DNA from: Monocercomonoides exilis PA203
Taxonomy: Eukaryota > Protista > Preaxostyla
Direction of reading: 5' to 3'
Assembly: GCA_001643675.2 (NCBI GenBank)
Contig: LSRY02000044.1
Span: 1 to 64,000 of the forward strand
Length of the DNA: 64,000 bases
Below the pieces are notes generated by a model, which was not told where the DNA came from, made no database searches, and was given only the letters and a program-made list of their open reading frames with translations. The position numbers and the translations under genes were made by a program. Numbering within the stretch: position 1 is the stretch's first letter; every line of letters begins with the position of its first letter. Shown in pieces: positions 5,401 to 64,000 of this stretch.

Positions 5401-5937
5401 GCCCCAGCCCAACCAGCTCTCCCCCGCACACCCCAGCCGCCTCCCGCAAAAGCTTGCTGTGTGCAGCATCCCCACCCGAAGCAGCACTCTCCGATATCTT
5501 CCAACCGATGCTCCCTCCTTGCTCCTCTGCCCTCTGCCCTCCATTCAGAAACGACGGCGACACAACCAGCGAGGGCAGCTGCATGCTCCGCTGCTTCTCC
5601 ACAATCCGCTCCACTTCCCCTTCCGAAAGCGATCCAGGAAACAAACCATAAAAGTCCTCTTCTCGCCCAATCGCTGCTTTGCCCACCATTTCCTGTGCTG
5701 TTCCCAGAGCATGCAGACTAATGCAGCCAGACAGACACTCTCCCCAAAACGCTCCCAACGCCAATCGAGGCAAATGTCCAGCACACACACCCCCTCCAAC
5801 CAACTCAAGCACTTTCGCGTATGCCCTCACAAACTGCTGCCGAAGCGCCCAAGCATCTGTCCCAAACACAAACACCCCTCTGTCTTCCTTCAAGTGCTGT
5901 GCCTGTCTCCTTTCCTGCCCTTCTTCTCCATTCGGAG

Positions 5938-5969
<32 letters not shown>

Positions 5970-12907: not shown

Positions 12908-14574
12908 GAGCACGCAAAACACATAAAGCTCAGAAACAGAGCGAAAACAGCAAACAAGAAAGCGAACAAAAAAATGTTGGAACACTCAACCATTTTGACA
13001 ACTCTTCAAATGACCCGGCACTGCTGCTATCCAATTGCATATGTTATTTATGTGACAGAAATATTATCATTTTTGTTATACTCACTTGTATTCGTGAGAT
13101 TTTTGGAGAAAACATCATGAAGATGAAAAAAAATATTCACAAAAAAAAATATTTTTTTTGCTCAAAAATGTGAAATAATCTTAATACAAAAGTGCAGGTG
13201 TGCGAAATGAGCACGAAGCAAGTGCAATCAAAAAAACGTTGACATGGCAAAAGAAAAGTGCTTGCAATGAAATTGCAAGGATGATTCCCAAAACAGGCAA
13301 GACTCATTCAAAAGACACATCACAAAGAGATGGAGAGATAACAGATCCATCCGACGAAGCAAAAACAAACAAACTGAAATAAAATGGAATGATAATTTGT
13401 TGCGAGAATAAATCACTTATTCTTTTTGTCCGCTTGTCAATTGCAACCTGCTTTGCTTTTGCATTGAAAATATCTTCAACTTCTCAAAGACTCCTTCTTT
13501 TCCTTAACTTTCACAACTTTCTCGCATCTTTGAATAAGTTGATGAGCAAATAGAAATCCATTTCCTCTTCCAAAACGATGCTGATGAACGATGATCCAGA
13601 AAAGTTCGAAAGAATTGTTTCAATGGAATCTTCTTCCATTCTTTTCTTTCGTAATCATCAATGCTGCCTGTTCTCCTCTTCAATAATGTTCCAATCTAAA
13701 AACAGCCTTCAATCTGATTTTTCTTCTTCATTTTCCCTTCTTCCTTTCTCCAAAAGAAATCTTCCAGCAAATAGAATGCGTCAGGTATTTCTCAAATAAC
13801 TTCCATTGCCCTAAAACATGAGAAAATAAAAATTAAAAATTCAATTTTCGTGAAAAGATTCGAATAAAACAGAGTCTGTCGCATACCAATTGCAAATAGA
13901 ATCCCTTCCTTGCAACCTCTTTGCATTAACAAAATATGTCCATTTTCACTCATTTTTCCTTTTGTCCTTTTTTCTTTGAATTGAAATTCCATCTCTATCT
14001 GCAAGAAAATCACATCAAAAACCCAACCCAAATGCTCAAATAACCTTGTTCCATGCATCCCATCCCTTTTGCCAAAAGTGTCCATTTCGGCCAATCGAGG
14101 CAAAAACAATCATTTCTTTCAAAACATCAAAAATCTCTTCAAATAAAAATATCACAAAAATTCCACCAAAAGACATACATTTATATGTGGTGCAGGATTA
14201 CAAAACTTTCAGCACTCACACCTCTTCCATTCTTCTGTGAAACCAATTTTCACAACATTCATTTCTTTCCCAATTGCCTTTTCTCATGAAAACACAGCCA
14301 TCAAAATTATATGCTCTAAATAATGTGTTGTTCCATCTCAGAGGCAGATATCGCTGGATGGAGAGTGACGGCTGAAATATCAGAACATCAACAAAAATGG
14401 ATGAATCATTCTCTATTATTCATCGGATCATAAATTAATGTTGAAAAATAAACAAAGGAGAATATTTATTTTGATATAACAACATGATATTCAACAAAAG
14501 TTGAATGTAATTTTTTGTTGAAGTGCCCATATTAGTCTGTGAAAGAAAAAAGAAAAGAAAGCAGTTGGAGAGGC

Positions 14575-32200: not shown

Positions 32201-33836
32201 GTTTGCTTCAATCAATCGATTGATGTTGTCCTTCTGCGAATCAGAACTGCCCTCACCTTTTGACTGCTCTCGTTTCTCTGTCCTCATTTTGTTGTATTCG
32301 TCGGACGACTGCACTTGATGATATGGTGGGAGATCTTGTGTTTTGATTGTCTCAACAGACACAAACCAAGATGGAACAGCTTTGTACAGCAGAGGAGTAT
32401 CACTTCTCCAGCAAAACGGATATGAATGCTTGTACATCTCCTGCTTCACGACAACATGTCTGCTTTTCAGAAGTTTAATAATTGGTGTATCAGCGTCTTT
32501 CACGTACATGCCTTTGAAGTCAGTGACATCGTCAGTGAAACATCCATCTTCATTCACTGGGCACACAAATGGCTCACCTTTTGCGTTGATAACTCCGTTT
32601 TTCAAGCAAACGGCGTTATCATCTTCACCAAAGAATGGAGCGCAATGCACAATTCCTGTTCCGCTTCCTTCTTCAACAAACGAGCCTGAAACAATGCGTA
32701 GTCCGGTCTGATCAATCTTGTTCACAAAATACGGGAACAGAGCCTCGTATTTCCATCCTTCCATTTCTGATCCTTTAATTCTGATTATTTCTGTTTGATC
32801 CATTTTCGCAATTTCATCGCTGGTAAAGTATGATGAAAGACGTTCTGCTGAAATGATCCACCAAGTGTTTGTCGGAATTTTTGGTTCTTTTGGTTTTTGC
32901 GGATTTGGCAGCATTCCCCTTACTCGAACATATTCGAAATCTGGGTTAACAGCAAGAGCCATATTTGAAGGAAGAGTCCAGGGTGTTGTTGTCCATGCCA
33001 AAACATATGTATCCATTTCATTTCCTTCTGCAGTTTTCTGTGATGAAAAGTGTGCTTCTTTCAATTTAAATGCAACTGTTATCGCTGGATCTGAAACATT
33101 CTGGTAATTTTGACCTGCTTCAAAGTTTGACAGTGGAGTGTGAAGAGCAGTGGAAAATGGCATAACTTTAACTCCCTTGTAAACAAGTCCCTTTTTATCT
33201 AATTCTTTAAATGCCCACCAAACACTTTCCATATATTTTGTATCCATAGTTTTATAGCCGTTATCAAAATCAATCCAACGCCCAAGACGAGTGACATTTT
33301 GGCGCCATTCCGAGCTGTATCTCATAACGACCTGTCGACACTTCTCATTGTATTCTTTTAATGATACATTTCCGTCTCCTCCTTTTGGTGTTGGCTTTCC
33401 GATGCCAAATAGTTTTTCAACTTCAAATTCAATTGGAAGTCCATGGCAATCCCATCCAAATCGTCTCGTAACATGAAATCCTTGCATATGCCAATATCTT
33501 GTTACGACATCCTTTCGTTATTTCAAAACGTCATAGTGAAAGATCTTGAAACAAAACAAAAATCGAAGCAAATTTGAAGAAATACCTTGATTGTTCCAGC
33601 AAGAATATGTCCGTAATGGGGCAGCCCTGTTGCAAATGGAGGACCTAATCATATAAATGAAAGAAAAACAAATTATCAAAACAAGAAATCCAAGATTTTT
33701 CAATATTTCAGATACCATCATAAAACAAATATTCAGGACGTCCTTCACTTTGCTTCAATGATTGCTTGAAAGCATCAATTTCTTCCCAATATTTAAGAAT
33801 CTTTAATTCCTCCTGAGAGTACGAAAAACGACTCAT
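29234..33836 (-). CDS. IARS1: Cytosolic isoleucyl-tRNA synthetase (eukaryotic type), 3 exons: 33836-33716, 33644-33586, 33511-29234; 1485 aa
   Basis: Spliced N-terminus [24 protein letters not shown] (HIGH motif = HYGH), [46 protein letters not shown] and KMSKRLKNY. Both introns are GT-AG and preserve the frame. Confidence 0.98.
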
Positions 33837-34370: not shown

Positions 34371-37257
34371 TTAATGAAAAGCATCTTTCACATTCCATGT
34401 TGAAAACTGAAGGATGCATGAATTTTCTGATGAAATGTTTTGAAATGAAAAACAAAGATTTGAAGGAGGGAGTTGGAGATGTGTCAGTGGGCGAAGTGTT
34501 GATGAAATGGTTACTGTTGGTGTTGAATTTTGAGAAGGTAATTGAGTAAAAGTTGTTGTAAGATTGAGCGTTCCTTCCTGTAAATAATAGAGCTACATTT
34601 TCATCATGATAATTTTTAATAAATAAACAATAAAAAAATAGATTTACAAATGAAGATTTGAAATAATCTCATAGCATACTGTAAGTGAAGACTGAGAAGC
34701 TAACTGCTGAAATTGCTGAGATTGTGGAGGGAAAAAGATAATTCCGGCAGAATACATGGAAGTTCGAAGAGAATGAAAGATTTGTATCGGTCGGAGATTG
34801 GCTGTTGGTGTTGAATGGATATGTGAAGTGGATGTGGAAATAGATGCACTTGAAATTGAAGGATAGCTCAGCGACTCAGGCAACGCAATCGTATGAGCAG
34901 CTTTGAGTTCTTTGATGCGTCCAGTCTCAGTGAAAATAGGGAAAAATAGGCAATTGTCTTCGGCTGAAGGACTCTTCACAGACAAGGACAGTTCGTCGGT
35001 AAGCGGGCGTTCCAATGCTATTGCACTGGAATCCTTTGGAGCAAGCATCACTGGAGTGCTTGGCTTCTCATAATCATCAAAAATCAAACGATTTGCATGA
35101 CGCATGCTTTTAACGAATGAAGTTGACTTTAAATTTGATTTCAAAAAGCCTTCAGATGTTATGTGATCTGTATTTTTCAGTTCGGAAATTGCTGAAATGC
35201 TTGCATCATTTTTTGTAAAATTAACTTTTCCATTTTCATCAGTTTTTTCATGTTTTGTTTTATATTCCACTTTTTTTCCATTGTCTGTTTTGATTTCAGT
35301 ACAATTGAGGGGCTCAGTACTGTTTTTGATAGCATTGCTAGTTCTTTCTTTACAAACTTCTTCTGCTTCTTTTTTTTCTTCCTCTTCCTCTTCCTCTTCT
35401 TTGTGTTTTCTGCTTTTATCTTTTTCCTTGGATTTGTCAATTCTTGCACGAACTGCTTTTTTGATTTGTTTGTCAATCATTTGGTCTTTTTCAGCTTTTG
35501 TCATCTGGTCTTCACTTTTTTTATGATGTTTGCGAGGCGATTTATGCAACGAATTGTGTGGAGAGATCTTCTTTATTTTTAATTTTTTGGCAGTTGGGCT
35601 GAAGGAATGATTGTTGAGACCAGCAGCATCGTCGTCTTGTTCTTCTTTCATACTTTGCGCAGATCCAACAGAAGTTGCATCTTTCTGTGAAGTCAAGCTT
35701 TCTTTTGCTGTTTTGTTTTCTTTTAGCGTTTCTGCCAATTCAACCTGAGCATTTGCATCGTTTTCATTTGCATTGAGCACTTCAATTGAATCCGAATCGT
35801 CTTCGTCTTCGTCTTCATCCAATGGGTGATACATCACATACGCCAATCGCTCGCTCCCTCTTCGTTCAGATTCTCTCAGACTGGCTTTTCTGCTTTCGTC
35901 ATCGGTTTCTTCTTCTCTGTAATCCTGAGGCAGTGAAACAATCTCGTCATCAGATAGCAAATTGTCTGAAAAGATCTCAGGAATTTCTTTTGCTTCCTCT
36001 TCTTCCTTTTCGGTTTTTTCATCATCACTATCTCCATTTTGTCCGCTTGTTTTGTCTGTCTCTTGGTTTTTTTCGATGATCCTTTCGTTTTCGCGCTCTG
36101 CATTTTCGTCATCTGAATCGTCAATCTTTCTTCGCTTTGTCGTGTTTGGTTGTATTGGCTTCTTCTCTTTATTTCGAGAAATTGAAGACAATGACTTGGA
36201 AAAAATTGACGAAGAAGGGAACGAAGGTGAATCATCAGAAGTTGGAAGTAAGGAATTAGTTTGCGTCTGGATTGCTTTAAAGAATGGAAGTTGGGAAGGT
36301 GGTAATCTTTGTGGGAAAAAAGAAGCATTGGAGGATTGGCTTGAATTATCAGAAGGAAACTGCAAAGAATAAGATTTCAAAAAAGCTTTAAAATCAGATG
36401 AAGTTGAGGGAACAGAAACTTCAAGTTTCGATTGTAAATGGTCCTGCGAAATGTTCGTATGCAAATAAGAGTTGCCGCCATTTTCATTGTGAATGGTTTC
36501 CACGCGATTTGATTGAGATAGAGGTGTTGAATTGAGCGAAGGAGAAGAAGATACCATTTCGTTTGAGGATTTTCTTGATGAGTCATGGCAATTCTGCAAC
36601 TGCAATGAATTTTCTTCCTTGTTTTCAGCGCTTTGAATCTTTGGATCATCAAATGACTTTAAATCAAAAGAAGAGGAACTGGATAAACGATCATCCTTCA
36701 AAGAAGAAAATGAAATACATTATGTGAATGAATAAAAATTGTAAATAAGCCTTCAAGCAAACTTTCTGAGAGGATGAAAAGGTGGAACCATTTTTGTGTA
36801 TTCCTTTGTTTTCATTTGCATTGAAAGCTGAGTGATCAGATGGCTCAATGTGTTCCTGTAATAATGTTTTGCTAAGAATTGGTACAATCTCTGAATGAAT
36901 AGCATCAAATTGCAGATTGTGTGAGGGTCTTTGAGCAGTAACTGTTTTTATCATTGGGATTTCTTCTTGTGAAATCGTTGAACAATTAATTATTTCCTGA
37001 TTGAACTTTTTTGGTACATGCGCATTTTCAAGCTCTTGGTGATTTGTTTCGTGAAGTTCACTCTTGTGACTTAATAATTGATGCATTTGAGAAGGGCATG
37101 CAATTGAATGAGGTAAATCAATCAACTTTTTCGTTTCAGTTGAAATTTGCTTTTTTGTATTTGTTTGAAATGGCAATATGTTAGTAGTGTTTCCAATTTT
37201 AAGGTCATTGGTATAGAGTTTTTGATCAATGAGTTCATCGAGAAAAATTGAAGCCAT
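34371..37257 (-). CDS. Probable divergent CENP-C/Mif2-like kinetochore protein, 3 exons: 37257-36763, 36695-34680, 34592-34371; 910 aa
   Basis: Two phase-0 GT-AG introns and a long disordered S/E/K-rich body. The spliced C-terminus YSAGIIFFPP...SSLT|LYYLQEGTLNLT...LQLPPSNLCFSFQNISSENSCILQF fits the CENP-C cupin pattern. The gene itself is well supported; the identity is inferred. Confidence 0.6.
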
Positions 37258-39523: not shown

Positions 39524-40295
39524 ACACAAATTGAATATACTTTTAACTTGAGGATTGAAATAAAACATATATTGAGTGAAGTGCATACAAAATGTCGATT
39601 TATTCAAACAACTTTATCTGAAAACTTATAAATTATCTTTTTATTAATTTTTTATGAAAAATTGTTTCAATTTTTTCTGATTTATCAAAAACCAAAAATA
39701 GAATTCAGTTATAAAATATTTAAAACAAGTCATTAAAAGAAAAAATGAAAAACTTTTTCAATTACAAACATGTGTTGCAAAAGTTTTTGAATCATTTCTT
39801 GTTTTTTGATATGATTTTGTTATAATATCAATATTTGAAATATTACAAATCTTGCAACAACTTTTTATGAAAAAGACGAAATTTAAAACATTTTCTGAAA
39901 TTATTCCGTCATTTTTATTTTTTCAGTTCTTCATTAAAAAGACGATAAGTATTTTTCAAATTGTATAATTAATATTTCTAATAATTTATTTCGTGTGTTT
40001 TCCTTGTGAAATAACGGAGAGATATCTACAAAATATTATTTCCAAATCTCTTGGAATTTTGCCGTCGGAATTAAGTCAAGATATCCGGACTAAATTGCTA
40101 TATTTTTCCAGAGGTCATCAAAGAGCTTGTTATGTAAATTTACAAGATAATGCAAATGACGTCGATGGAAATACTAATAAAATTCTAAAGAATTTTAAAT
40201 TTCCAACATCAGTTTTATTAATAAATAATCAAAAACCACTCAAACCTCCCACATTGTCAACTATTACGATTATTGTAGGAATATCTTCACGAGCA

Positions 40296-46800: not shown

Positions 46801-49800
46801 GCCTGACTCAGCTGCAGACAGCAGCGGAGTTTGGAATCAGCGCAGATGAACTGGCATCGAGTGGATGGGCAATTTTAGAGGACGAAAGCAACACAGGCAA
46901 AAATGCTCGTTCTGATATTAATCCAAGGGAGTGGAAGACAAACAGTGATGCGTATTCGTCTTCTTCGTTCTCCGAGGGCTCTTCTTCTTTCTATCAGAAC
47001 AATCCAAATGGCCCACGTTTTTCGTCTGTGTACCAATCCTCCACGAACATCCTGCCTATGCCCACACACCTGCCTCCTTCAGACTCAACCAGAAATCTTA
47101 ACAGCATTCCGCAGCTCGACAGGGCAGTCAGAGAAGAGATAAGAAATGCGACTCTTCAACAGGCAGCGAATGAAGGAGAGAAGGACAACTCGATCTGGCA
47201 GACGCTCTCTTTAAGCTATCCGCTCATTATGAAGGTGCTGAAGATCGCCAGTTTACTTCCAGCAGAAAAAGAGTATTCTGCTGTCCTGACAGAACGCTTC
47301 TCCATGTTTGATTTCCTGTGGACTTTCAACCCGTCAAGTGTGATGGACGAGCTCAGCTTTCTCACACATTCTCCAAAACACACAAGAGATCTGCCCACAA
47401 TCTTCGTTCCTGACTCTTTCGTGCGCAACAAAGCAGCAAATGGCTCTTTCTCATTGCTTTCAGAAGATTATGCAGGTGGTGCTGGTGGTACTGCCATCAA
47501 TGCAGAAGACGGCACTTCTCCATTGTCGTTTCATTCATCTCCTCCTTCTTCAAAGTCCACAACGCCAACCTCAACCTCGCCGCGCAGCACTTTTGATCAA
47601 AGATATCTTTCTGACTTTGCTTTCCGCCCTTCTTCAGTTGCCTCACAAATGTCCCCTTCTCCTTCTCCTCCATTCTCAACTTCAAACAACATTATTTCCA
47701 CTCGCCGCAACTCTGCTTTCTCCAGCACTGCCTCTCTTTCCTCTTCTCAGCCTTTCTATTTTGGATCACCAACCACTCAATCACTTTCATTAGCGCGTTC
47801 ACACACAACTTCAGCTGCATCTTCCTCTTCTTTTATCACACCCAGTTTGAGTGTTCATTCACTTTCACTGGCTTCGTCGCCTTCCCTTTCCACAATCGTG
47901 TCCTTGTCTGCACACGGAACAGAGTCTTCTGTGAGAAGAAGAGCATCACTCGCAAAGGAAGGCTCTCGCTCTTCTTTCTTCACATCTGCCCGGACAATCC
48001 AACAGTCTGTCGCTCGCAACTATCTGAGCAAGCTGCGATACGAAGCTAAACACACACTGCAGTTCCTGAAGACACCATTTTATCCATTCTCAATAATCGT
48101 CAGAGAGCAAGAAAGAGACGAAACATCGCCTGAGCTATTCAGACCGGATGAAATGCCTTACATTTGCTCGTTTTGCAACCAGCCCTTCGCATCTGCTGTG
48201 TCGCTCACGAACCATCTTCACGAAAAGGGCAACATTCATTCAGCACAAACGCTGTCGAGAATGTTTTTTGATGTGGAAGTGGAATACATCTCGCACTGCA
48301 TCAGAAGGCTGCTGGCTTGGAGAGAAGCTCTGTCGATTGTATATTTAGTGCTCTGTTGCTCGTACGCTTTCTTTGCTCCACTCAACATTCTGAAGAGCAG
48401 AGGACTGGCTGATGAAAAAATACATTCGGTTATCAGCAACGCATCTAATCTCCACTCTGCCTCGAATTATCTCCAAATGTTTGTAAACAGAAACAGAGGC
48501 AATTGGATGGCAACTGATTTCAGCGAGAAGTTTCAGTCTGGCATTGAAGCATCATCGCTGTACTCATCTGGAAATGTGTTGAATCCATATGCATCAAAAA
48601 GAGATGATGCAAGCAATTCACCATATTCAGGTTGGAAGAGCAATGGAAACTTGCTTCGTTCAGATACTTCAGGATTAATAAACACAGATTCATTACACGG
48701 TGTCATACAAAGCACATCTGCTTCTGGAATTGGTGGTGATTATTCCAATTATTCTTCATCTGCCTCTTCAATTTCGAGTGATGGAGAAACCATTCCCGAA
48801 CAGCTCATATCAAATCTTCTTGCTATCTTTGAGCCAATTCAAGTGTGCGGTTCAATGTGTATCTCGTTTGGTCTGATCATTCCTCGTTTTGTGGAGATTC
48901 TGAACAAGTGGCTGAGCGTGTTCACAGACAGGCTCGATGCAGAAATGCACATCAAACTGAATGAGTGGCTGGAAGAGCTCACAAACATGAAGCAGAGCGT
49001 GAGTGGATCGATCGAGTCGATTGAAGACCTCCAAAGGTTGGAAGAGGCATTTGTGGTACACCAGGAGAAGTCTGTGGATATTGACCTGGCGATGGAGAGC
49101 TTGAGACATGCTTATGCTGTGCTGATGAAGGACCCCACGAAGGACAGAAGCAAAACGCATGCACTGCTGACTGAGGTGATTTCGCTTTGGAACGACATGA
49201 AAACGTCCTTCGACGAATTCCGCAATTCACTCGAGTCGAAGCAAGCGCAGCTGGCTGAGCATGTTATTCGCTATCAGGAAGAGTTTCTGTCTGGGATGAA
49301 AGTGCTGATGGACGATGTGACGACTGTTGAACCTGCCTTCCATCGGGTTGATCTCGACCCTCTGAAACAAGCAGAAACAGCGGGGCAGTATTGCCAGCAG
49401 CTCGATGAAAAACTCACAAAGCTGAAGGAGCTGAATGCAAACGAGGCTCTTCTCAATCTGCCGCAGACTACATCAGCACAGCTGACAACGGAAAATAACA
49501 AAATGCAATATGCACGCAACTTGTTTGACTTGTACAACGAGTTCAAGCAGTGGGAGAGTACAATCTCCAACACCCGCTTTGAACGAGGGGCATATGCATC
49601 TCTTGTTGATCAGCTGAACATCTACTTCATTCGCCTGCATGATGTTCAGGAGATGAAGCCGAAGGACGAGAAGCCGCTTGAGATTTCGAGTGTGTTTGAG
49701 AACGAGTTGGATGAAGTGAAGCGGCACTTCAATGCGCTCTCTGCGATCGATCCGTCACAGCTGCGCAGCCGCCACTGGGCGCAGATTGGGCAGATGGTTG

Positions 49801-52800
49801 GGTCTCTGCAGCTGCAGGACAACGACCAGGCACCCACACTGGGCACGCTGATCAAAGCAGACATCACTGGAATCACTGAGAAGATCGACAGGATGCTGCC
49901 GGATGTGATTGGCGAGTACACAATCGAGTCAGAAATAGCTCTGATTCAAAAGCGCTGGTCTTGTTTGAGGTTCGAGTTTGAGTTTTCGAAGGGTAAAGGC
50001 AAAATCATCACACAAAAATCATGTATACGTGCGATGGAAGAGGCCAACCATTCGCTGACTGTTCTGTCGCAGCTTCTGTCCAGCAAGAACAGCGCTGTCT
50101 TCTCATCACTAATTTCTGAGTGGACGGTGCTTCTCAAACACATCCCTGCGCAAATTGAGCTGCTGATCGCAACACAAAACATGTTCCAGCTGCTTCACAA
50201 GTTCTTCTGGTCGACTTCAGTTGCGAACGACTTGCCAACTGAAACGCGGCTGTTTGAGAAGTGCGAAACGGACTGGATGAAGATGCTTGTCCGCATCGAG
50301 CGCAAGTCGCTTGTTGCGCGCTGCCTGGCGAATGGAGAGTATGTCTCCAATGCGCTGCCCCAGCTGCACGAGAACCTTATCGCCTGTAAGGAGAAGATAC
50401 ATCCGTATCTGCAGAAGAAGCAGGAGGCGTTTCCTCGGCTGTTCTTTCTGACGGAAGAGGAAATCATCAAAGGTCTGTCATTCACCACAAACGTGGATGA
50501 TCTCATTCCAGAGCTTCAGCGTCTGTTTCCTCATCTGCTGTCTATTCGTGTTGCCTCATCGGATTCAATGAAAGGTCATATGCACTCACCCACATTCGAC
50601 ACAGCATATGCTCTTCCACGTGGAAGATGGGCAGGAAAGGGAAACGACGAGCAAAACAACAAAAACAAGAGCAGACGCAATTCAAAGAGGATGAGAAAAG
50701 AAGGAGAAGGTCTTCAAAGATCTGCTTCTTTTTCTGCGTTTGATGGAGAAAATGCATTCGGTTTCGGTTTAATAAATCAAAGGAGTCAACAAGAATTGTC
50801 AGACGATAACAGAACAAGAAATGGAGACAACTTTTATGCAGATCATGCGAATCCATTCGGCCTGACTCATTCACGCTCCATGGATTCTCTATTCAACGAT
50901 GGCGAAAACAGGAATAACACTTCAAATTTCAACCAATCGCCAGACCGCAGCATGTCCTCAATCTCTCTTTCGTCTGTTTCATCTTCAGACTCTTTTGGCT
51001 CTTTTCCTGGAGCACATCTGTATGCTCCTGACAATGATGCAACATCTGTGGCTGATCCGGACTTGAACGAATTTGACCATCTGCCGCGCTTTCTGCTCTG
51101 CCCTCCGTCGATCCAGCAAAGAAAAGCTATTCAACAAACAGACACACTTGCCACATTTAACTCTCATACAAGAAGCAAATTCCCATTGAGAGATGCTTCA
51201 GAGAGATCGCGCAAGGGTCTTCAATCAAGGAACAGAGGATCCCAAAGATACGTCACAGATACCACGCCTCATTCAGACGATTCTTCGCGGTTTAGAAAAC
51301 AAAATGATTCAGACAGCCATTTCCAGACAGTTTCTTCTATCTCCAAAAGTGGCCAGTCACAGCAGAGCGGAGAACGAATGATCGACCAACAGACAGCGCA
51401 AAAGAGAAGAGCAATGCAAAACTACCCGATGCGCTCTCCAATGCCAACACCTGATTTGACCAGTGAAATGGACACAGTCGATCTATCTACTATCACAGCA
51501 CGCGATGCAGGGGTTGCAAGAACGGCGACTCCGCAGTCATTTTGGACTCAATCATCCAAAGTGCTTTCTGACATGTCGGGAAATGTTGGGGGTCCAACAG
51601 CAGCAGCAGCAGCATCAGGTGAAACAGACATTGATGACAACTTTGAGCAAAGCAGCGATGAAGACTTTGATTTCTCGACTTTCCTCAATAAGGAGAAGGA
51701 AAGGAAAAGAAGGAGAAGGAGAAGGAGAAAGAACAGAAGAAGGAAAAGGAACGAGAGAGGAGGGATTAACCACAAGCACAGAAAAAACACAAGATCAGAT
51801 GAAGAGCAACTTCGAAATGCAGAAGAGGGCAGTGGAATGATGATGCAGGATTACCACGAGCATTTGGATATGCACCCTCTTCTGCTTTTTGAAGGCAAAG
51901 ACAACGATTCTTCATACTATTCCTATGAAACCGATGAAAATCTATCTGAAGGAGGATATTATGATCAATCCAATGAATATGATGATAGCGAATATGAATC
52001 AGATGAAAGCGACGAAGAAGAAAGGGATGAAAAGCCAACATACCTCAATGAATATGGAAGCAACAGAAGGAAGAAGTATCATTTTGGTGATTCAGTTTCA
52101 CCATATTCTGCGATGGAGCACAGACACAGACGAGAAAGAGGGCAGCAGACAGTGTTTGTGACAGATGTGATTGGCCCGCTGAAGGAAGAGCTGCCATTTT
52201 TGATCTCTGTCCCGTTCATTCCGGGAGACGACCTCACAAACTTCTACACACAGCTGGAAACATCGATGCGCCAGTCAGTCAATCATCTTGTGATTGAAGC
52301 AACAGTCAAGCTCTATCGCATGTTCTACACAAAGAAAGTGACAAATCCTGTTCGAAGGAAGCTTCTCGCCCAGAAAGAGAAGCAGCGCCTGAGCCAACTC
52401 GAGATTCAGACAGAGTCTTTCACGAAAGTGCTGGGAAAGTCAGAGAAGAATAAAGCAAGAAAACAGAGAGAAATTGAATCTGATAAAGAACACCAAATTC
52501 TGTTGGGTGATCCATTTGAACGACAAACTGGTACAAACGAGAGTTATGAGCAAAGCACATCGTTTTCTGTATCTTCTTCATCTTCATCTTCAGCATCATC
52601 GCCTTCTTCTTCTCAGCAACAGTCAAAGTCATCAAAGCATGAATTCCTTCCGCTTGTGCGTGTGGGTGAAGGAAACTTGATTGATGCCATTTTGGCTGTC
52701 TGTGACCGCACAGCTTTTCGAGTGTATTACGAGCGGTTTCCGAGAGTCGCGGCGTTTGTGCGATCAACCATCGCACAGTCGTGTTTCTTTGCTTTTTCTT

Positions 52801-55800
52801 CTCTGCTGTTCAGCCTCATATTCCAGGCACTGGTTGAAATTGCAGATTTCATTCAAGAAGTGGACAAGTCTGATGAACATCTGAAGACTTTGGATACAAC
52901 TTTTGTGAAGGCATCTGGCAACTATCCAGATACCAAATATTCTGCTGCTTCAGAAATGCCAATTCCGTCGAGTCCGTCTCTTTCAACAGAACCATCCAGA
53001 CAGTCCTTAAAGCAGCTATCTTCAGCCTTTTCAATATCACCAGAGCTGGAACGAACACGAATTTCTATTTCGACAAATATTCGGATGCTCCGCAGAGAGC
53101 TGTATGAAGATATCACAGCCATCCGCTCGTTTCTGGCCAGCAATCTCTGTGCACTTGACCGCATCAAAGGAGAATCAATGCTTGCCAGCTCTCTTTTCTC
53201 TCTTTCTACACTCGATCTGCTGCTGATTGCAATGAAAGACTACACTGTGCTGGGATTGCTGATCAACTGTGTTCCTCACTACATCATCCAGACCACGCCA
53301 TACACCATTGAGCTTGTTCAGATGGTGTATCCACATCTTTTGGAGCTCGAAGACGGAGCACCTGGTGAGAATGGTGAGCCAAACCCACTTTTACCATTCT
53401 TGCGCAATCCAGCTGAGTGTGTTCCTCATCCACCCTCAGCATCTCCTCTGATGCCAGACATATCTCTCCACATAGGCAACCACGCCATTCCGTATGGATG
53501 TGATTATTTGGGTCACACAACTGCAGAGATTGACATGTGGTATGGCATCATTCCGGCAACACCAGCATTCAACAAGTTCCAAAATGAGGTCGAAGATGAG
53601 TCGATTTTCTTCCTGCGCACGGCAGAATTCAGATCGACATTTGCATCAAATTTAGCTTCGCTTTATCCGTCTGCCAATTCATCTAGCGAGCGAAGCGATC
53701 TCCGTTCTGATACACTTACCTCTGATTCATATGCGACTGATGCTATTAACTCTGGACTCTTGCCATCGGTTCCCAGTTTAGGAGGATCTGCATATCAACA
53801 AGCTGCCATTCCCTTGCCTTCCACTCCATCATCTCCTTATTCAAGCTCATCTTCATCTTCAATGGGCTCTTCAGCATCTTCCAGCAACTCCATCTTCAAT
53901 GCAGCACTGGGCGAAGTGAAGTACCCTAATTCAGTGTGTACTGTACTTATGGCAGACTCCGGGCAGTCAATCAAAGACCATCTCAACCAAATGTGCTGCC
54001 TGTGCGGAAAGATCATGTTTTGTGTTGATTTTTCACCGGAAACACATCCGGTGAAAACTATCCTGAGGTTCATCAGGGGAGTTGTTGGAGGTGGAGTTTG
54101 GGGTGTGATGCGAGGGTTTTTCAGACTGAACATTTCAACACAGGAATATCTTGCTTCTCTGATAAACAATGCAGTTGTAGCTGTTGTTGAGGGACAAGCA
54201 AGAACACACATAACGAACGATATCATCACTCCTATAAAAGCTGGATTCCACTTCTTCTGCTGCGGGTTTATCAACGCAAACGATGTGGTCCTGCCACCAG
54301 TGATACGTGCTCGCTTCAGGAACATCCATCTTATCACAGCTGATCCTGCATTTGAACTGTACTCTCATCTGCTGCTCAGCGGCTTTTCGTATGCAACACA
54401 TCTTTCTCGGCGTGCCATGTTCTTCTGTGACTCATTGGCGAAGGCAACAAGACTGAGCACTGACCACATGCGATGCACACTTTCTGCACTGGGGAAGATC
54501 AGCGGTGCAATGTTGAACACAGTTGTGAGGCAGTTCATTGAACCTTTGCTTCAGAATGGTTCTCCGAAGGATTTGTCGTCGCATCCAGTTTTTTCATACG
54601 TTGACTCAGATAGAGATTCATTGATAGTGTTTAATGAGCAGACAGCACGTTCATCAGCTCTTCAGAACTTGAATGAACAATCTTTGGCACCTGCGTCGTA
54701 TTCATCTTCTTCTCCTTCTTCTTCGAATACCCCATCTTCTTTAGTAATGTCTGAAACTGCAGCTTCACCAGCTTATTCGCAGCAAAATCCGACAAATGGC
54801 AATATTCTTTCTCCTTCTTCTTTGCCTTCAAATGAATTGACCAGTTCTGATTCACCGTTTGTTCCTATTGATTCAATCGATGATTCTTCGCAAGTATTGT
54901 TTCCTTCTCCGTCAGCTCCACCAACTTTGGATTCTGATGTTGCAATGATACTTGATGTGCTGCACACAGCATTGAGAAGATCTTCACAGGTCCATCTGAA
55001 CAATGCTTTGAGACACGAGCGACTTCAATTTTTGGTGGAGTGTTTAACAGTTGCTGCTTACATGACTCACGTTACACGATTTTCACTGCAGGAAACAGAC
55101 GAGCCGATCTTCAACTCGATCGTACAAAATGTGTTTCCTGAAGTGGCTTCGTTTCTGATTCCGAATAAACTAATTGCTCGCTCCTTTTCATCAACTGACA
55201 GGAGTGAAGACAAGTCCATCTTAAGTCAAATCCAAGATCTGGATTTGGGCAGAATCGACACATTCTTCACAAAATCTCTTGCATCTTCGGCTTTTCGTCT
55301 GTCGATGTCGTTGATTGTTGTGTCACCACATGCTCCTGCTATCATCTCAGCATTGAAACAGCGAGATTTGCTATCACTTACAAGCAATCCATCTGAAAAC
55401 AAGGAAGAGGACGGAAGCGAAGAAATTAGCAGCATCGAAGAAGATGGAATATTTAGTGCTGACGAAGAAGAGGGCACGAGCATTTATGGTGAAGGAAGTG
55501 AAGACAACGAAATGTTTCACGAAGAAAGAAATGACATTTATGGAAGAGAGAGGATCATTTACAATCAGGAAGGTACTTTGGCAAACAGACAAACATTCGT
55601 TGATTGCAGGCTTCCGCTTGACACGCCAAGATACACAAGATTTCGTTATGTTCAGCTTGGCCACAGCACAGCGCTTCATGCAGCACTCCGGAACACGAAA
55701 ATGAATGGCCAAGGAATGCTAGCTGCAACTGAAGGAATGAACGAAACTGATCCTGGGGCGATGGGGAATGAAGGAATGAGAAGCGATGGAGAGAACTTTA

Positions 55801-58800
55801 ATGGGCAAATGCGGTTCAATAATGCAAATAATAACGCCTCTTTGATGTCTGAAACCCGCTCGCGAGCTGATTCACGTCTGGAGCATTTGGATTATTCGAC
55901 ATTTTCTGGAGATGCCTACAGCCAATATTCGAACAATTCACTTAGCAGTGGCAGTTCAAGTAGTGACCCGCATAACTTCACTTCTCGATGGGGAAAAGAA
56001 AGCCAAAAGAGAGCATATAACTTTGAATTAATTGGTGCTGGAAATGCAGTGCCTAAGTTTTTCAAACGCTCATCTAACGATCCATTAAATGATACTGAAG
56101 AAAAAGAGATGAAAACATCAGCAATCAAAGATGAGGCTACTGAGATGAAGAATAAATCACAAATGGAAATGAAAAGCGCGCTTTCTTCTGAAGAAGGCAA
56201 AACCGATTCGATTGAAGGGAGTCAACAAGGAAATGCAAGCAGTGCTGTGGAGAACAAGCCGTTGCCTTCGATCAGACATGTGTCTCAATTCGATCAGGAT
56301 CCATACAACACATTTTTCAGCAAGTCTCCTTTTTATCCGCAGAAATTGACAGACGTTTCAGCCGAAAAGTTTCTGGATGTGTTTGGGAAAGGCGAGCCTC
56401 AGCTGTGCAACTCCCTTTTATCGCTTGTGTCAAAAGTTGTTCAGCTGTACAGAATCATCCACAACCCTCTCCACACCGCTCCTTTGCGTGCTGGCTCCAT
56501 CCCTTCGCTTGGGCCTGTGGCTGTTGTTGGACCGCCTGGTGCTGGAAAATCGCTCGTGATTTCGACTTTGGCACGAGCACAGACACTTTCGGGAATTCCA
56601 ACAAGGATCATCCGCGTCAACCCTGCAACTCTGACATCGAAGCAGCTGTTTGGTGGATTTGATTCGACAGTTGTTCAGAGCAACCAAGATTCTATCTCAG
56701 GAGATAAAAAGAAGGAAGCGGCAGTTTACCATTCAGGCCTAGTGTCAACGGCACTCGCACAAGTTGAAGCGTCGCATGCTGCAAGACTGAAATACTTCCA
56801 GTCGATACAAAAGAAGATGCTTCGTCCTTTAAATGGATCAATGAGATCAGATGGAAATGGAGAATTCACTCATTATTATGGACAAAAGAATAATCAGATA
56901 AAATCGTTAAGTCATTTAAATTCACCTAGCAAATATCAAAACTCCACATTTAACTATGAAATTGAAGAAAACAATATTGAAATGAATGGAATAAGACTGA
57001 CAAACAGAGTGCAAGCTCAACGTTTTGATCAAATTCCAGTTGGATCTCCTCAAAGTTCTGCTTCATACAACACCAGAGGAATGTCAGAAGCAGAATCGCA
57101 GAGAAGGGCAACTTCTCCGATGACCGTCACAACGGCAGGAATGGGCGACAGCGCAGACAACTGGCACTCGTTTGATTCAAATGCTTTTAAATACGAATGG
57201 AAGACTCCTCATTCGATGGCTCGTGGGTCATTCGACTTGCAGAGCGAGGTGAAGAACTCTTCTTCTCTCACATACTCTGTTGACGGACAGCAAAAGCAGA
57301 TGTCCTACGAATCTCCTCAGGAGGCAATCGATCCAGAAGGACCAACATTTACTAAGCCTGCACCACCTGTCAGAAGACATAAGCATAAGAGCGTTCAAAA
57401 TCGTCCTGGGGCAAAGAACGCTCAACGTTTGATGAACAGCAGCGCAATAAAAGAGCGCAAACAGAATGCAAATAATCTTTCTCATTTTTCTGAAGAAGTC
57501 TTTTTGGTGTTTGATGTTACGGCAAGCTCAAACCACACCACGTCTCTTCTGGCAGACATTGCTCATTCCTATCAGACAACACCTATGACACGGAATGACA
57601 TGAAAAAGAACTTTAAGTCTGTGCCACCTCAGTTGCAATGGATAATTCAATACGATCCGCTTTTCACACGAAGCAACAGAATCCAATCTGCAATTATGAG
57701 TGAATTTCTTTTGAAAGAGCACGAGTCATTGACTGACCTGAAAGTGGAGTCTTCATTGAATCAGATCTACTCAAAAATACTTGGCTGCGAGCCTCCTCCG
57801 CCTCTGATCCTGAAGCAAAAGTACCTTCGGGGCATTCTTTTGGGAGAGCCGTGGAAAAGATCAAGCAGCGAGATGGATGATGCCACTGGGGGAAATGTCG
57901 ACCTGACTACGAGTTACGGTGTGCAGAGACTGGAAGAGCTGCTCAACTCCATTTCTCCACTGTCGTTGCAACCAGACGAAATGAGTCTTCAGCTTTCGAC
58001 GATGTCACTCGAAGAGCTGCTGCAAGTTTTAGAGGCTTCAGAAATGGACAGAACTGGGTTTGTTCTGTCGAACATGAAGAAAATCAAGATTCCACCAAAT
58101 GTGCGAATTATCATTGAAACAGACTCTTTGGACAACTTCCCTCCATCAGCACTGCAGCGCATACAAACACTGAGAGTTCCACCTTCTTTGCTTTCTTTCA
58201 CTCGTCCAGCGTTGAATATCATTGAGCTCGGGCCATTTCATCAGTTTGGTGTGGGGCTGTTTCAACATATTTACAAAGTTATTACAACGCAGCTTGCAAT
58301 GAAGGCGGCTCCTTCAACAGAAGGAAGAAAGTACTCGGAGTTGATTGACCAGTTGTATCGTCTAACAACTGAATCATCTGGGTTTATTGCTTCTCTGATG
58401 TTGGAGTGTGGGCAGTGGATGCGAAGATATTTTAACACTTTCCAGACAAAAGATCACGTTTTGACAGGAGGAAAAGGAAGGTCTAAAGTGTTCATTCCAG
58501 GACAGCATTGGACACACGAGTCACACATTGCATTTGAAGAATACGAAAATGGAATGAAGCCAGAATCCGAAGCCAACTGTGCGAGAGGCACTGATGGATC
58601 GCCAATGTACAAGTCACCTGCACAGATACTGCTGGAATGCTTTGACAGAGACGAGCTGCATTACGATCAAGTTCTAATGGCAATAACAGACAACGTACTC
58701 GCTCTATTTCAGGCGCAGCTGGACTTTCTTCTTTCATCTCTGTTTGTTGGAATTAAAGAAGTTGCCGGCTACAAGAAACAGAAGAAACACAGATCAAAGA

Positions 58801-61800
58801 AAAAGGTCAAACAAGCTGTTGGAGGTCAACTTCTCATTGCAGCAAAAGCAGGGGTATCAAAACATCAGACTTCTGGAACTTCAAATCAGTCAGCTTCTAC
58901 TTCATCGTCATCTTCTTTATCGGCTTCAGCATTGCATTCATCGAGTTATTCCTCTTTGAATGATCAGTCACAATTAGATTTTGAGGACAAGCAGCTATTC
59001 TCTGAAAGCATGAGAACAGTAACACACAGAATTGGGCTTTATGCCGTGTTGTGGGGATTTGGTGGCCCGTTTGTTGGAGATAACAATTTCATCAGCAGTT
59101 TTTCTGTGTTTCTGTGCTCTTTGTGTGATTGCTATCCACAATCTCCGACTTTGAATGCGATGACCACGCCAAATGAAAGAAATGCACTATCTCAACAGGA
59201 CATGAAGAGCATGTGTGAAATAACTGGGCAGAACGAGAAGAGAATGATGAAAGACACGCTGTTCCATTTCTTTGTGAATCTGTCAACTGGAGAATGGGAG
59301 CATTGCGTCAGTTATGTGCTTAACAATCCACTTTCATTTCGGAGCACGTCAAACGATCTCTTTAATGTGCTTCGCAAAACAGAAACAGAGCAAATCAATC
59401 CATTGTCTGTTCGTTCATCGTCTTTGCCTCTGAGTTCAGAATTAAGCGCACAAGACTCATTAAATTCTCGATCGATTGGCAGTGCTGATTTGACTACAGC
59501 TGCATCTCTTGCAATGAATATGAAACAATTGGGAGCAAGCCCTTCATTCTTTGCCTCAAGCAGTGAGTCTTCATCTGAAGATAGCTCAAAGCAACAAGAG
59601 CCTCAAGGAAATGCAAACATAGACGAGCCAAAGAGAGTTTTTCACTTTGACACATCAAAACCAGAAAGAAACGAAATTTTCAATGTGCGCATAGACTTAT
59701 CAGGATCATACTCATACGCCACATCTGAATTTACAACGCAAAATGTTCTTCCTCATTCTTCTACTCGCGATTCTTTCGAGTTAGGTGATGTGAAAGCAGG
59801 CCGTCTTTTCAAGAAACCTTCGAATATAAACAACATAACAGCAACATTTGCTCATCATGCACCCATTTTCCATGTGCTTGCTTTGTATATTTATGCCAAC
59901 CGCGGAGTGATATTGTCATACGGCGATTTCTTTAGCATCAAAACAGTTGTTGACAGAATACCTTCTGTTCCCCTTTCGTCCATGCCGCTTGTCAACTCTC
60001 TGCGAGATCACAGACTGACGATGAATGTTTCTATTTCATCCGACACACAGCCTTCGCAGCTATGGAACGTAATTAATCAAGCTCGCAAGATCTGCCACGC
60101 TCAGCAGTCGATTTTGAACTCTAACATCAAATTGCAGTTGAGGCCAATGACACGTTCATTTAACAACGCTGCTTCATCTGCGTTTTATGACAATTCTAAC
60201 GATCAATCAATGATGTGGAGCAGCGCAAGGAGATATGGCTCTCTTTCAGAGACAGTGCATTCCACACTTTCTGGACTTCGCTCGCGCAACAATAGCTATT
60301 CAGAACTTCAGAAGCTGCAGCAATCTTCGCCTCAAAATAATCTTAAGGCAAGTCAGATCCGTGCAAACAGCTCTCAAGCAACACTCGCTCCACAATTTCA
60401 ATCGCAATCTGTATTGCCGAAGAACAACCAATCAGTAAAATCAGAAAGCAATCCCCAAGAATCAAAGGGAAGTGGTGAGTCACTCCCAGCACAGCCAGCA
60501 AATGAACTTCCTCATCAAGTTATACCGATGATCTGCTTTGACCTGCTTCCACCTGTCCAGCCAGGATGCCTCGAGCTCATTCGAACAACAATTGAGACAA
60601 AGCAGGGAATCAGCTCTGACTCCTCGCCTCGCTTCGTTGAACTGTTAAACGTAAAGTTTCTTGTTCTTTTAAATGAAGCCTTTACAACTTGGATACCACC
60701 ACGCATTTCTCGCCATTTTGCTCGATTGGCCATCAGAGATCAAACTGTGGATGAGCAGTATTTAATTATGTGCAACCATATTCTTGAAGGCATTCCTCAG
60801 TACATGAAGAACAGCTGTTTGCACGACGAAATGCCAAAAGTGAAGACGCGCACTTCTTTGCATCTCACAAAAGAAAGCAGGAAGAATTACAGGTTAAGCG
60901 AAAGTGAGAATTTCAAAAAGCAAATTGCACATAGAGATTCTCAAATCAGTACCAAATCAAGCAATGAAAAGCAGGGCGATTCGTTGGCTGAATCAAAGGA
61001 TTATCAAGAAGATGATCAGAACAGTGCTGAGGAACACTTATTGGGTGAAGAAGCTTCTCATTCGTTCCCATCGAAACCTGTCTCTGAACTGTTAGATCGC
61101 ATTCCATCTGCAACTCATTTTGTTTATCAGCTGCTGACATTCATTCCGACACGAACTCTGCATGCACAACCTCTGAGACAGCAATTGGATATAATCTTCC
61201 CCATTTTCCGGGTGTTTCCTCTGACATTCCAGCAGCCTTTGATGGTCATTGCACTTTTCTGCCGCTGGGTGTGCAAAGACCCGTCCTTTTTGCAGAACAC
61301 GCTTTCTGCGTCGATCACTTGGGCACGTGCAGTGAAAACAGTCTTTTCAGACAGGCTTTCGCAAAGAGAGATTCTTTCGCTAGAGATTATCATCTCGTTC
61401 ATCTCGTCTGCTCTTTATGAAGGCAAGCCAATCGATACAAAGAGATTGGTTCGAATAATAAACAACCTTCCTCTGAAGCATCCAGAAAAAATGTATAATC
61501 TCCTTGACTTTGAGCTGATAAGGCAGATGAACAATGAAAAGGATGAGCAAGGACTGAAGAAAGCAAGGCGCATCATCATTAACAATACCGTCTTGAAGAA
61601 TATGTCCATGTACCCTCCATCTTGTACGACATATCTTGCTGCCAAACTTATGGAAATTTCAAAAAAGATAGAAAAATCTCATTTGTGCATCATTAGCGCC
61701 CCTCACTTGCTTTCACTGCCTGTTATTAACAACATCGCTGAATCAAATGGAATGGAGCATCTTCATCTGCAGGTTGGCTTATCTCCAGTTTCTGTGTTGA

Positions 61801-64000
61801 ATGTGATTCGAGCCGCAATTGTGTTTGCCACACTTGGGAAGAAAGTGATGGTTTCTTTATTCCTGCAGCATCTAACCAGTATTGTTGAGCTCAACGACTT
61901 TTTTTCCTTTTACACGAGTAAATACGAACATGCTGTGGGTCCTTCTGCGTTGGAGTCAAAAGCATTCGAAGCCAATTTGAATGCTGTGCACTACAAAGAA
62001 GCAAAAGGACATTCTCCAACAATATTAGAAGACACAATGGGGCTGCACTCAACACCTTTTATCTCTGCAAAGCATCTGTACCAGGAGGATGTATTGACTC
62101 CAGCTTCAATAAGCCAAGTTATTCTGACTGTGATTCATTCAAATGCGTCTGTTTTCCTTCTTTTCAGTGAAAAGGAGATCGAATCGATTCTTTTGGAAGC
62201 AAGACAGCAAAAGCTGACGCACTCATACAGTGCACAATGGATTCTCGATCAGGTTAAAGATAACATCCGCTTTTTGATTGTTGCTGAGCACACGAATGAC
62301 AATTACGCAACAACAAGCTCTGAATCATTTGAAGTCTCTCGTAGAGTTGTGAAGCAGATAGACAACGCGTCTGCAAAGAAGAGAAGGCTTTTGAATCATC
62401 TGGAGCTGTATCTGGCAGCTCAGCAGTCTCGCAGGCATCGCTCACACACATTGTCGAAAGCTGCTTCGCCTTTCATTGCCGGACGTCGCTCTCTTCGATT
62501 TCCTGCTGAATCCGCATTTTCTGCGCAGCAAAGGAATAATTCGAGTTTTCAGAGATTGCCATTGAATTATCAGCAGCAGTTTGTTGGAGAGGTTAATGTT
62601 GATGGAAAAGAGGATGAGAAGCGAAAGCAGCGTAAGATCAAAGAAATGTTTCCGTTGTATCCATCGCAGCTGTCTTCAATACAGTCAATTATTCCATACA
62701 TCTTTCCTGATCTTTCTTCTTCTGTTGTATCATCAACACAGGAATTAAAAGTTAGTTCCGATGGTCAAGCTCGTTCTGTGCCTTCACCTTTGTTTCCTTC
62801 ATCGTCTTCTTATTCGGCTTCAGCATTATCTCAAAGAACACGCGCAACAAACATGGCGAGCGGACAAGCCACAGGAGCAAGAGGGCGCGCACTTAATTAC
62901 TTGTCACAGGAATCAGCACTTTTTGATGGAGTTAATGCTTATCAATCGAGATTATCAGCTCAACGTGCCTCATCGTTCAACAATGGCAATGCGCAATCGT
63001 ATTCAAATAGCACTTCCACTATGGATTATCGTCAACAGCGACATGCTTCAATGCCGATTGATGGATCAACAATTTTGAAACAAGCGCCAAAATTCATTCC
63101 GCCTGATCTTTCACACAGCTGTGTTTCTTTTCCAGGCCTCACCTCTTTCGATTGGATACATGAATTGTTTGTGTTTGAGAACGTTGAGCCACTCGATGAG
63201 AGCTTTTTCATTGATACTGCGAAGGAGCTTCTGATTGACACGCCTTTGCAGCGGATGGATCTTCAGTCTCTGAAAGACTCAGAGCAGCAGCTCGTGTTTG
63301 CAGCAATGACTCTGCTGAACTCTGCCTCTTCGCAGCAGAATGTGGACCCTGCTGAGTATCGTCCATACGCCTTTGCGAATCAAAATATTGAAGTTTCAGT
63401 GGCAGAAGAAGAGATTGACGACGACGAAATCGCACAGCAGCTGGCAGCAGCGGAGATTGCATCTGCACAAACCCGTCTTTTGCAGAGAGTCACAGGACAC
63501 AATGCGACTCATCCAATGTTTGCTTCTATTCCTCGCAAAGCACAGCAGCGAAGCGAGCACAATCAGATGTCTCCTTCTCCTTCCACATCGGCACTGGGAC
63601 CTCAATCGCAACATACAATGAGTACTTCTTCATTAAGAAAGGAATCATCTCAATCTCCGCTCCCATCTTCTTTGTCTTCATCATCATCGACTTCTTCTTT
63701 TTCTTCTCCAAGCGCAAATTCTCGCACTCTTCGCCCATCCTCTTCCATCGTCTTGTCCAGCACACGTTATCCTTCTGTTCGCTTTCGAAAGCGTCGTAAG
63801 TACAACAGCCATTCAAGTGGATCACCCATGAGCAGCTCAGATGGTGTGAGTGACCCCAACCAGAAGCATTCAGCCAGAAATGAGAGCCGCAAAGTGTCTG
63901 CACCAACACAGCCGCCTCGTCCGCTTGTGCGAACAGTTCCGTTTCCCGCAAGGCTTTTGCCAAGAAAGATCATCATCATCGATTCTTCGTCTGCATTTCC
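40296..64000 (+). CDS. Giant divergent dynein heavy chain-like protein (>7,900 aa, 3' end beyond the window); the frame is open from 39969, so the true start may lie upstream of ATG 40296
   Basis: The track reports no closed ORF in this frame, consistent with no stop before the window end. Motifs in dynein order: linker LRSRHWAQI (49761), YLQKKQEAFPRLFFL (FPRLFFL at 50430), YGCDYLG (53493), AAA1 scaffold (about 53900-54500), AAA2 KVVQLY...GPPGAGKS (56529)...NPATLTSKQLFG, AAA3 RISRHF and VFSDRL, AAA4 LFSEKE...QVKDNIRF...FPGL. Confidence 0.92.
42006..42057. repeat. (TCT)n run encoding poly-Ser within the dynein-like ORF
   Basis: Read directly. Confidence 0.9.
43890..43992. repeat. (TCTTCTTCC)n-type run encoding over 30 consecutive Ser within the dynein-like ORF
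   Basis: Read directly; the antisense frame gives poly-Glu. Confidence 0.9.

Follow-up and report, generated by a model that had tools for sequence, protein, structure and literature searches.

We analyzed a stretch of 64,000 nucleotides from the oxymonad Monocercomonoides exilis PA203 (contig LSRY02000044.1, here denoted C41, positions 1 to 64,000; hereafter the window) and found that it holds the first two thirds of a giant dynein-like gene, located on the forward strand at C41:39969-73175. Dynein heavy chains rank among the most conserved eukaryotic proteins, and their engine is the ring module AAA1, whose hydrolysis powers linker remodelling and microtubule release. We consider it likely that the C41 gene encodes a complete, ATPase-dead dynein chain, which belongs to an oxymonad family of giant chains and would serve as a static cross-linker, spacer, or tether of microtubules. 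An initial annotation of the window had described a dynein scaffold with lost nucleotide motifs at 53490-63240. That span lies inside the gene, although it covers only the middle third of it.

The giant open reading frame (ORF) was found to be intact. Frame +3 is open from 39969, past the end of the window, to a stop codon at C41:73175, which gives 11,068 codons without an internal stop over the window and the next 18 kb, and the other five frames of the same stretch contain 406-596 stops each. Based on base composition, the probability that a frame of this length lacks a stop is ~1e-263. The GC content of the ORF (44%) differs from that of the upstream (23%) and downstream (35%) sequence. The stop-free frame and a coding-like GC content unlike that of the flanks suggested that this is a maintained coding sequence and no recent pseudogene. 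The gene reads as intron-poor, with ~11,000 codons. The ORF had been called intact in the initial annotation, with a recent pseudogene as the alternative; the absence of stops, together with the collinear conservation of blocks in paralogues and in two other oxymonad genera, excludes that alternative.

We characterized the domain architecture with Pfam, with phmmer searches of PDB sequences, and with hhalign. The linker domain (DHC_N2, PF08393) is located at 49497-50589 (E 3.6e-48, 164.9 bits against a cut-off of 31.9) and is the best-conserved portion of the giant protein. The large domain of AAA1 gave a partial AAA_6 match at 54036-54485, which covers only profile positions 66-210 of 214, after the P-loop (31-34 bits, up to 34.1, against a cut-off of 25.2; Pfam span 54036-54474). 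The lid of AAA2 (Dynein_AAA_lid; E 1e-4; hhalign) was identified at 58974-59303, the stalk family MT scored slightly below its cut-off (E 3.7e-5, 23.4 bits against 24), and Dynein_C was matched with E 0.003. All of these Pfam matches stand in dynein order. Our canonical references were 17 dyneins encoded in the M. exilis genome and 25 dyneins of other eukaryotes, and AAA3 and AAA4 were placed by hhalign of the family alignment described below against an alignment of the 25. This comparison supported the segment from the AAA2 lid to AAA3 (probability 94%, E 9e-8), AAA3-AAA4 (97%, E 1.7e-10), and AAA5 to the C-terminus (1,026 columns, 99.7%, E 7e-27). Single-sequence and Pfam searches recognized nothing over AAA3-AAA4, and the family profile of this part gave a marginal result against PDB sequences (E 0.064).

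The stalk and the microtubule-binding domain (MTBD) are located at C41:~65990-66850. In the alignment, the landmarks 'NPP', 'F...L.....D.i...q.e.l..y', and the stalk base 'GD.ilaaaF' are kept, and the MTBD carries a flap-like insert of the type found in inner-arm-type dyneins. At the other end, the tail aligns with the Blattamonas nauphoetae protein KAK2964927 from codon 17. A look-up in a protein database (atlas) returned only generic dynein fragments. The scaffold had been aligned to dynein by eye in the initial annotation, and Pfam, phmmer, and hhalign agree with it: the predicted architecture is that of a whole dynein, with linker, six AAA modules, stalk and MTBD, and C-terminal domain in the correct order.

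The foremost unusual feature of this predicted protein, above the changes in AAA3 and AAA4, is the state of AAA1. At the Walker A position (53943-53978) the sequence reads VLMADSGQSIKD, which has neither glycine nor lysine and stands opposite canonical GPAGTGKT with a deletion of five residues in the MAFFT alignment. At the Walker B position (54099-54125) it reads WGVMRGFFR opposite WGCFDEFNR, with Asp-Glu changed to Arg-Gly, both in HMMER alignments with PDB sequences and in MAFFT. Both strings had been singled out as lost motifs before and were found in place, aligned as had been proposed. The whole 11,068-codon ORF contains exactly one GxxxxGK[ST] motif, the GPPGAGKS of AAA2 at 56529, and our search for an intact Walker A with Asp-Glu elsewhere in the ORF found none. 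The alignments thus indicate that the AAA1 P-loop is deleted and that the Asp-Glu of Walker B is replaced.

The sensor-I claim of the initial annotation is less certain. The region of strand beta-4 and sensor I (54252-54323) reads FFCCGFI-N, followed by a conserved 'LP..IR..FR', and the string FCCGFI is present at 54255-54272. However, its register is uncertain: two alignments disagree, and N4769 stands directly after the strand, so that the sensor asparagine may survive in this copy, although it is not conserved in the family. We also predicted the structure of AAA1 with AlphaFold from a 22-sequence alignment. The model has a pLDDT (predicted local distance difference test) of 85-97 over residues 55-270, and strand 58-63 leads to helix 66-80 via a two-residue turn where the P-loop is expected. 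In a Foldseek search with this model, 48 of the 50 listed matches were dynein motor domains, including all of the top 48 (E ~1e-8). This result is supportive and non-independent, since canonical sequences were included in the alignment behind the model.

AAA2 carries the one P-loop that is kept. GPPGAGKS is located at 56529-56552, as had been reported in the initial annotation, and aligns with the P-loop that AAA2 carries in dyneins of solved structure; in the phmmer search of PDB sequences, VVGPPGAGKS pairs with VVGPTGGGKS in AAA2 of axonemal dyneins. The Walker B strand of AAA2, FLVFDV (57501-57518), keeps its aspartate with no catalytic glutamate next to it, as in canonical AAA2. This aspartate was found in nine of ten aligned family sequences, with a glutamate in the tenth, and the residue after it is V, L, T, or M in every member and never the catalytic glutamate. 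Canonical AAA2 binds ATP without turning it over, as is seen in structures of cytoplasmic dynein. A family-specific insert of ~200 residues follows Walker B. The retained sensor-I region and the second region of homology, IIIETDSLD...PPSALQR (58107-58166), lie opposite canonical FEV.DL..ASPATVSR, and the family does not conserve the 'SR' arginine of AAA2, the residue that would face AAA1.

AAA3 and AAA4 are degenerate at their nucleotide sites. In AAA3, the strand and P-loop position (59907-59945) reads VILSYGDFFSIKT (aligned as GVILSYGDFFSIKT) opposite canonical pvLLvGxxGTxKT; the loop reads GDFFSIKT (GVILSYGD/FFSIKT), or has a four-residue gap, where GxxGTxKT is expected, and only 'KT' is kept. 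The Walker B position of AAA3 (60528-60719) reads CFDL opposite FiDD and is followed by a conserved 'PPRxxRHF', of which PPRISRHF pairs with the 'R..RHF' motif of AAA3 in hhalign. The lid motif W..VFSDRL (61314-61358) lies opposite W.HE..RVF.DRL. In AAA4, the strand and lost P-loop (61683-61718) reads LCIISAPHLLSL (aligned as HLCIISAPHLLSLP) opposite GHxLLVGvgGSGKxS, with SAPHLLSLP in place of GvgGSGKxS, so that the glycine-rich loop and the lysine are both lost. A conserved block, LFSEKE...NIRFLIV (62160-62291), lies opposite LF..dE...NLHiVL. Canonical axonemal dyneins also miss the strict GxxxxGK[ST] at AAA3 and AAA4 (GESGTSKT, GVGGSGKQS), yet they keep the glycine-rich loop and the lysine. 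The AAA3 and AAA4 strings had been located by eye; their coordinates are exact, and both sit at the canonical strand and P-loop in the hhalign comparisons at 94% and 97%, respectively.

Residues that align to relatives make up just 44% of the protein (4,894, about the size of one normal dynein), and the remaining 56% is serine-rich insert with 19.5% serine. The largest insert is lineage-specific and spans 1,093 residues between AAA4 and the stalk (62304-64000, continuing to C41:65582). Within it, a 42-base tract of serine codons at 63664-63707 (TCT/TCA-rich, encoding PSSLSSSSSTSSFSS) has 82-95% matches on at least eight other contigs. We rejected a mobile element as the source of this tract, which is low-complexity coding sequence common to many serine-rich genes.

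To determine how far this state extends, we searched the M. exilis genome (82.3 Mb, 101 contigs) with the AAA1-AAA2 and AAA3-AAA4 pieces of the gene. This search uncovered three collinear paralogues in giant ORFs of 10,716 (C56), 10,340 (C69), and 13,776 (C45) codons, with 22-44% identity. The three were read in part, and their Walker A counts cover the regions read; in these, the P-loops of AAA1, AAA3, and AAA4 are lost and that of AAA2 is kept. A HMMER scan with AAA1-AAA2 against 1.84 billion representative proteins returned 20 matches. The nine strongest long matches all came from B. nauphoetae, another oxymonad (KAK2964927, KAK2952531, KAK2962130, KAK2951150, KAK2958275, KAK2943275, KAK2958153, KAK2962832, and KAK2963507), and each of these proteins has exactly one Walker A, at AAA2. 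A short match clusters with a 1,332-residue fragment from Streblomastix strix (KAA6403757), in which the AAA1 P-loop is missing, the Walker B position holds WGVIEGIF, and AAA2 retains GPVGSGKS. Within the sequence examined, AAA2 holds the sole Walker A in 14 of 14 family sequences, and all 13 sequences that cover AAA1 are without its P-loop and catalytic glutamate. In the family alignment, the five-residue deletion at the P-loop is common to 12 of 12 members, the catalytic glutamate is found in none of the 12, and 'LP..(I/L)R..FRP' is conserved.

The relatives from the two other genera resemble the C41 gene in their lone AAA2 Walker A, in the same loss at AAA1 where it is covered, and, for Blattamonas, in collinearity from tail to C-terminus. 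The Blattamonas models differ in size (2,842-6,966 residues against ~11,000), with 20-45% identity in blocks and inserts that cannot be aligned. The names under which these proteins are deposited are purely automatic ('putative Dynein heavy chain, N-terminal region 2'), and a literature search on Blattamonas or Preaxostyla dynein and on pseudo- or orphan dyneins found no description of them as motor-dead. A word-based homologue search with the AAA1-AAA3 region returned no relatives, its candidate list probably being swamped by serine-rich words. The shared pattern in the paralogues, Blattamonas, and Streblomastix suggested that the loss is ancestral to an oxymonad-specific clade and was kept under selection. 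Judging from these sequences, the degenerate state is older than the split of the three genera and was kept through many duplications.

We constructed maximum-likelihood trees of AAA1 and of the linker. In the AAA1 tree, which does not include KAK2963507 (a protein that starts at AAA2), four sequences from M. exilis and eight from Blattamonas form one clade (100/100) on a long stem, and the C41 gene is sister to C56 (96/84). The linker tree also recovered the family (Shimodaira-Hasegawa-like approximate likelihood ratio test, SH-aLRT, 100), with the C41 gene paired with Blattamonas KAK2964927 (SH-aLRT 89). The outer-arm classes (including outer-arm alpha), DNHD1, and DNAHX were not sampled by name in these trees. 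The best linker matches had hinted at an origin from the DNAH10/I1-beta type, which the tree did not support.

Canonical heavy chains number ~17 in the same genome, and their AAA_6 matches are complete, at 340-540 bits. They share with the C41 protein the domain order, the linker, the AAA2 P-loop, the stalk and MTBD, and the region from AAA5 to the C-terminus. Unlike it, they carry GPAGTGKT, DEFNR, and TMNP and have 4,200-5,300 residues (6,360 on C43). Examples include cytoplasmic dynein-1 on C43, dynein-2 on C36 and C2, and a DNAH10/I1-beta type on C44. Two pairs (C65:21450-22430 and C81:36904-37884; C80:373001-373984 and C80:513901-514884) have identical AAA_6 scores and are identical over AAA1 in the displayed part of the alignment; they are recent duplicates or uncollapsed haplotypes.

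Weak or partial matches to AAA_6 were also observed in other giant ORFs (5,634-9,622 codons), at C14:~90.5-91.1 kb, C16:~482.7-483.2 kb, C30:~83.9-85.1 kb, C91:~82.1-83.0 kb, C10:~189.6-191.8 kb, C50:~545.7 kb, and C51:~351.0 kb. Those on C14, C16, C30, and C91 and the one denoted C10b were placed outside the 12-member AAA1 clade, on separate long branches. A GxxGxGKT-like AAA1 loop is retained in C10b and C91, and the other divergent giant ORFs are without one. Several lines of degenerate dyneins, independent of one another, seem to exist in the M. exilis genome.

Other genes in the window include a forward-strand ORF of 3,756 codons at 14539-25809, in which Pfam recognized only part of a protein kinase domain, namely its C-terminal half, at the far end of the ORF (PF07714, E 1e-7), the other 3,600 residues being without a match. 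A 1,417-codon class I aminoacyl-tRNA synthetase (tRNA-synt_1, E 6e-117, and Anticodon_1), a housekeeping gene, is located on the reverse strand at 29234-33487. Pfam matched nothing at E <= 0.001 in three more reverse-strand ORFs, at 2441-6802, 8554-12711, and 34644-36701 (1,453, 1,385, and 685 codons); the first two lie in unusually GC-rich stretches (up to 63%) whose GC skew is strongly negative.

We compared the C41 family with divergent heavy chains that have been described elsewhere. DNHD1 (DYNHD1) is an animal 'orphan' or 'ghost' chain that was formerly taken for a relic and is functional in flagella. Compared by description only, it is like the C41 family in being a divergent heavy chain with disordered insertions and with catalytic loss at the AAA1 Walker B, of which it lacks the catalytic residues (bioRxiv 10.1101/2025.01.18.633724). 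No named DNHD1 was present among those HMMER matches whose source names were looked up, and the resemblance, which had also been suggested in the initial annotation, may be taken as an analogy that implies no kinship.

Animals with external fertilisation possess a non-motile heavy chain, DNAHX, that has many inserts and poorly conserved AAA1 motifs. It heterodimerises with another heavy chain in the sea urchin, derives from the outer-arm alpha chain, and was reported absent from protists (all bioRxiv 10.1101/2025.01.18.633724). Like the C41 family, it combines a whole dynein scaffold with many inserts and an inferred or demonstrated lack of motility. Unlike that family, DNAHX keeps Walker A (with Thr changed to Val) and Walker B, with ATP at AAA1, and its MTBD is broken by an insert; the C41 protein has lost the P-loop by deletion and retains the MTBD motifs. 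The C41 family is also multi-copy, two to three times the normal length, and on a separate long branch. The deleted P-loop, the intact MTBD, and the separate clade all set it apart from DNAHX, with descent judged indirectly, from trees without outer-arm alpha or DNAHX.

Among protists, the text of Kollmar 2016 describes 75 unclassified orphan dyneins, outside 17 classes and lineage-restricted, and argues that most of the aberrant and orphan dyneins belong to the axoneme (PMC5100056). That text describes no family inflated two- to three-fold and does not include Monocercomonoides among its named species, and the term 'P-loop' is absent from its main part (PMC5100056). The main text of the Monocercomonoides genome paper reports a nearly complete set of axonemal dyneins and leaves these giant genes unmentioned.

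How such a protein would work can be outlined from its parts. With no nucleotide site at AAA1, the dynein power-stroke cycle could not run, and the protein would be unable to step. ATP at AAA2 would act as a structural cofactor that leaves the ring nucleotide-stabilised, the retained stalk and MTBD would bind microtubules statically, and the tail may anchor the protein or permit oligomerisation. The serine-rich inserts may be flexible or regulatory spacers. The giant dynein would then serve the microtubule cytoskeleton of oxymonads as a static cross-linker, spacer, or tether, and DNAHX and DNHD1 provide a precedent for non-motile heavy chains (bioRxiv 10.1101/2025.01.18.633724).

The main rival to this reading is a regulatory partner, in which the dead chain pairs with an active heavy chain as DNAHX does, either through phi-like inhibition for transport or assembly or as a brake on an axonemal arm. 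DNAHX, as a non-motile and insert-rich chain in a heterodimer, is a model for such a role, and the strong conservation of the linker, the flap-like insert in the MTBD, and the argued axonemal location of most aberrant dyneins (PMC5100056) point the same way. We nevertheless regard this rival as unlikely: DNAHX retains Walker A and ATP at AAA1 with a disrupted MTBD, which is the reverse of the C41 protein; at least four paralogues in M. exilis and at least nine in Blattamonas exceed the number expected for a single chaperone role; and Pfam detected no tail homology to a known dimerising class. It is very improbable that the protein is still a motor, with movement driven by ATP turnover at AAA2 or at some site that escaped recognition. 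In favor of a motor, the protein retains linker, stalk, and ring, and the AAA2 Walker A and Walker B aspartate are strictly conserved apart from the one glutamate substitution, but no member has the catalytic glutamate after that residue, canonical AAA2 is likewise non-hydrolytic, the 'SR' arginine is unconserved, and the ORF holds no second P-loop. A decaying relic with an accidentally open frame, or a mis-assembly, would fit the extreme sequence divergence, the low-complexity, serine-rich inserts that make up over half of the length, and the lack of an obvious ATG at the homologous N-terminus. This explanation is hardly credible given the ~1e-263 probability of an open frame, the coding-like composition that differs from the flanks, conserved blocks that are collinear from tail to C-terminus with two other genera and three paralogues, and an AAA2 P-loop in every one of the 14 family sequences.

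Several observations weigh against a static, functional dynein chain, the reading that we favor. Over residues 1-3,170, Pfam found no match to the tail domain DHC_N1. No in-frame ATG precedes codon 110 of the ORF (40296), whereas homology to KAK2964927 already begins at codon 17; that protein starts with M-E-K-Y-L, and the ORF reads E-R-Y-L from codon 17 onward. An in-frame ATG is present upstream at 39867, cut off from the ORF by a stop at 39966-39968, and a by-eye search for a simple intron linking the two gave no frame-consistent solution. This layout points to either a short intron at the 5' end or an unusual start. The relatives are at most ~33% identical over AAA1 and 20-45% identical in blocks, so that synonymous sites are saturated. 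The family is a long-branch clade that is nested in no sampled class in either tree, and the long branches blur its source class. Finally, the non-motility of the predicted protein is inferred from the loss of motifs.

Our results suggest that this family deleted the AAA1 P-loop and yet kept a ring of 3,000 residues, the linker, the AAA2 site, and the MTBD. This state is found in more than a dozen genes from at least three genera, and the family has meanwhile expanded to two to three times the size of a normal dynein. It may thus serve as a natural experiment on which parts of dynein a non-motor role needs. AAA2 nucleotide binding seems indispensable, which supports a structural role for AAA2. 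The C41 family would be a more extreme protist form of the already known non-motile dyneins, and the dead-dynein class of DNAHX and DNHD1 would reach from animals to deep-branching protists by independent origin.

Cross-bridges of the axostyle have been known from electron microscopy since the 1970s and 1980s, and we know of no molecular identification of them. The microtubule sheets of the oxymonad axostyle are joined by dynein-like, ATP-sensitive cross-bridges (PMC2108841, PMC2114570). An oxymonad-restricted dynein family is an obvious candidate for these structures, and we raise the tentative and rather doubtful possibility that these dead dyneins, predicted to bind microtubules, form the dynein-like cross-bridges or the lattice of the axostyle or preaxostyle. 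If this is true, a motor would have become a structural microtubule cross-linker in a lineage-specific manner, and the family would give axostyle bridges their first molecular identity.

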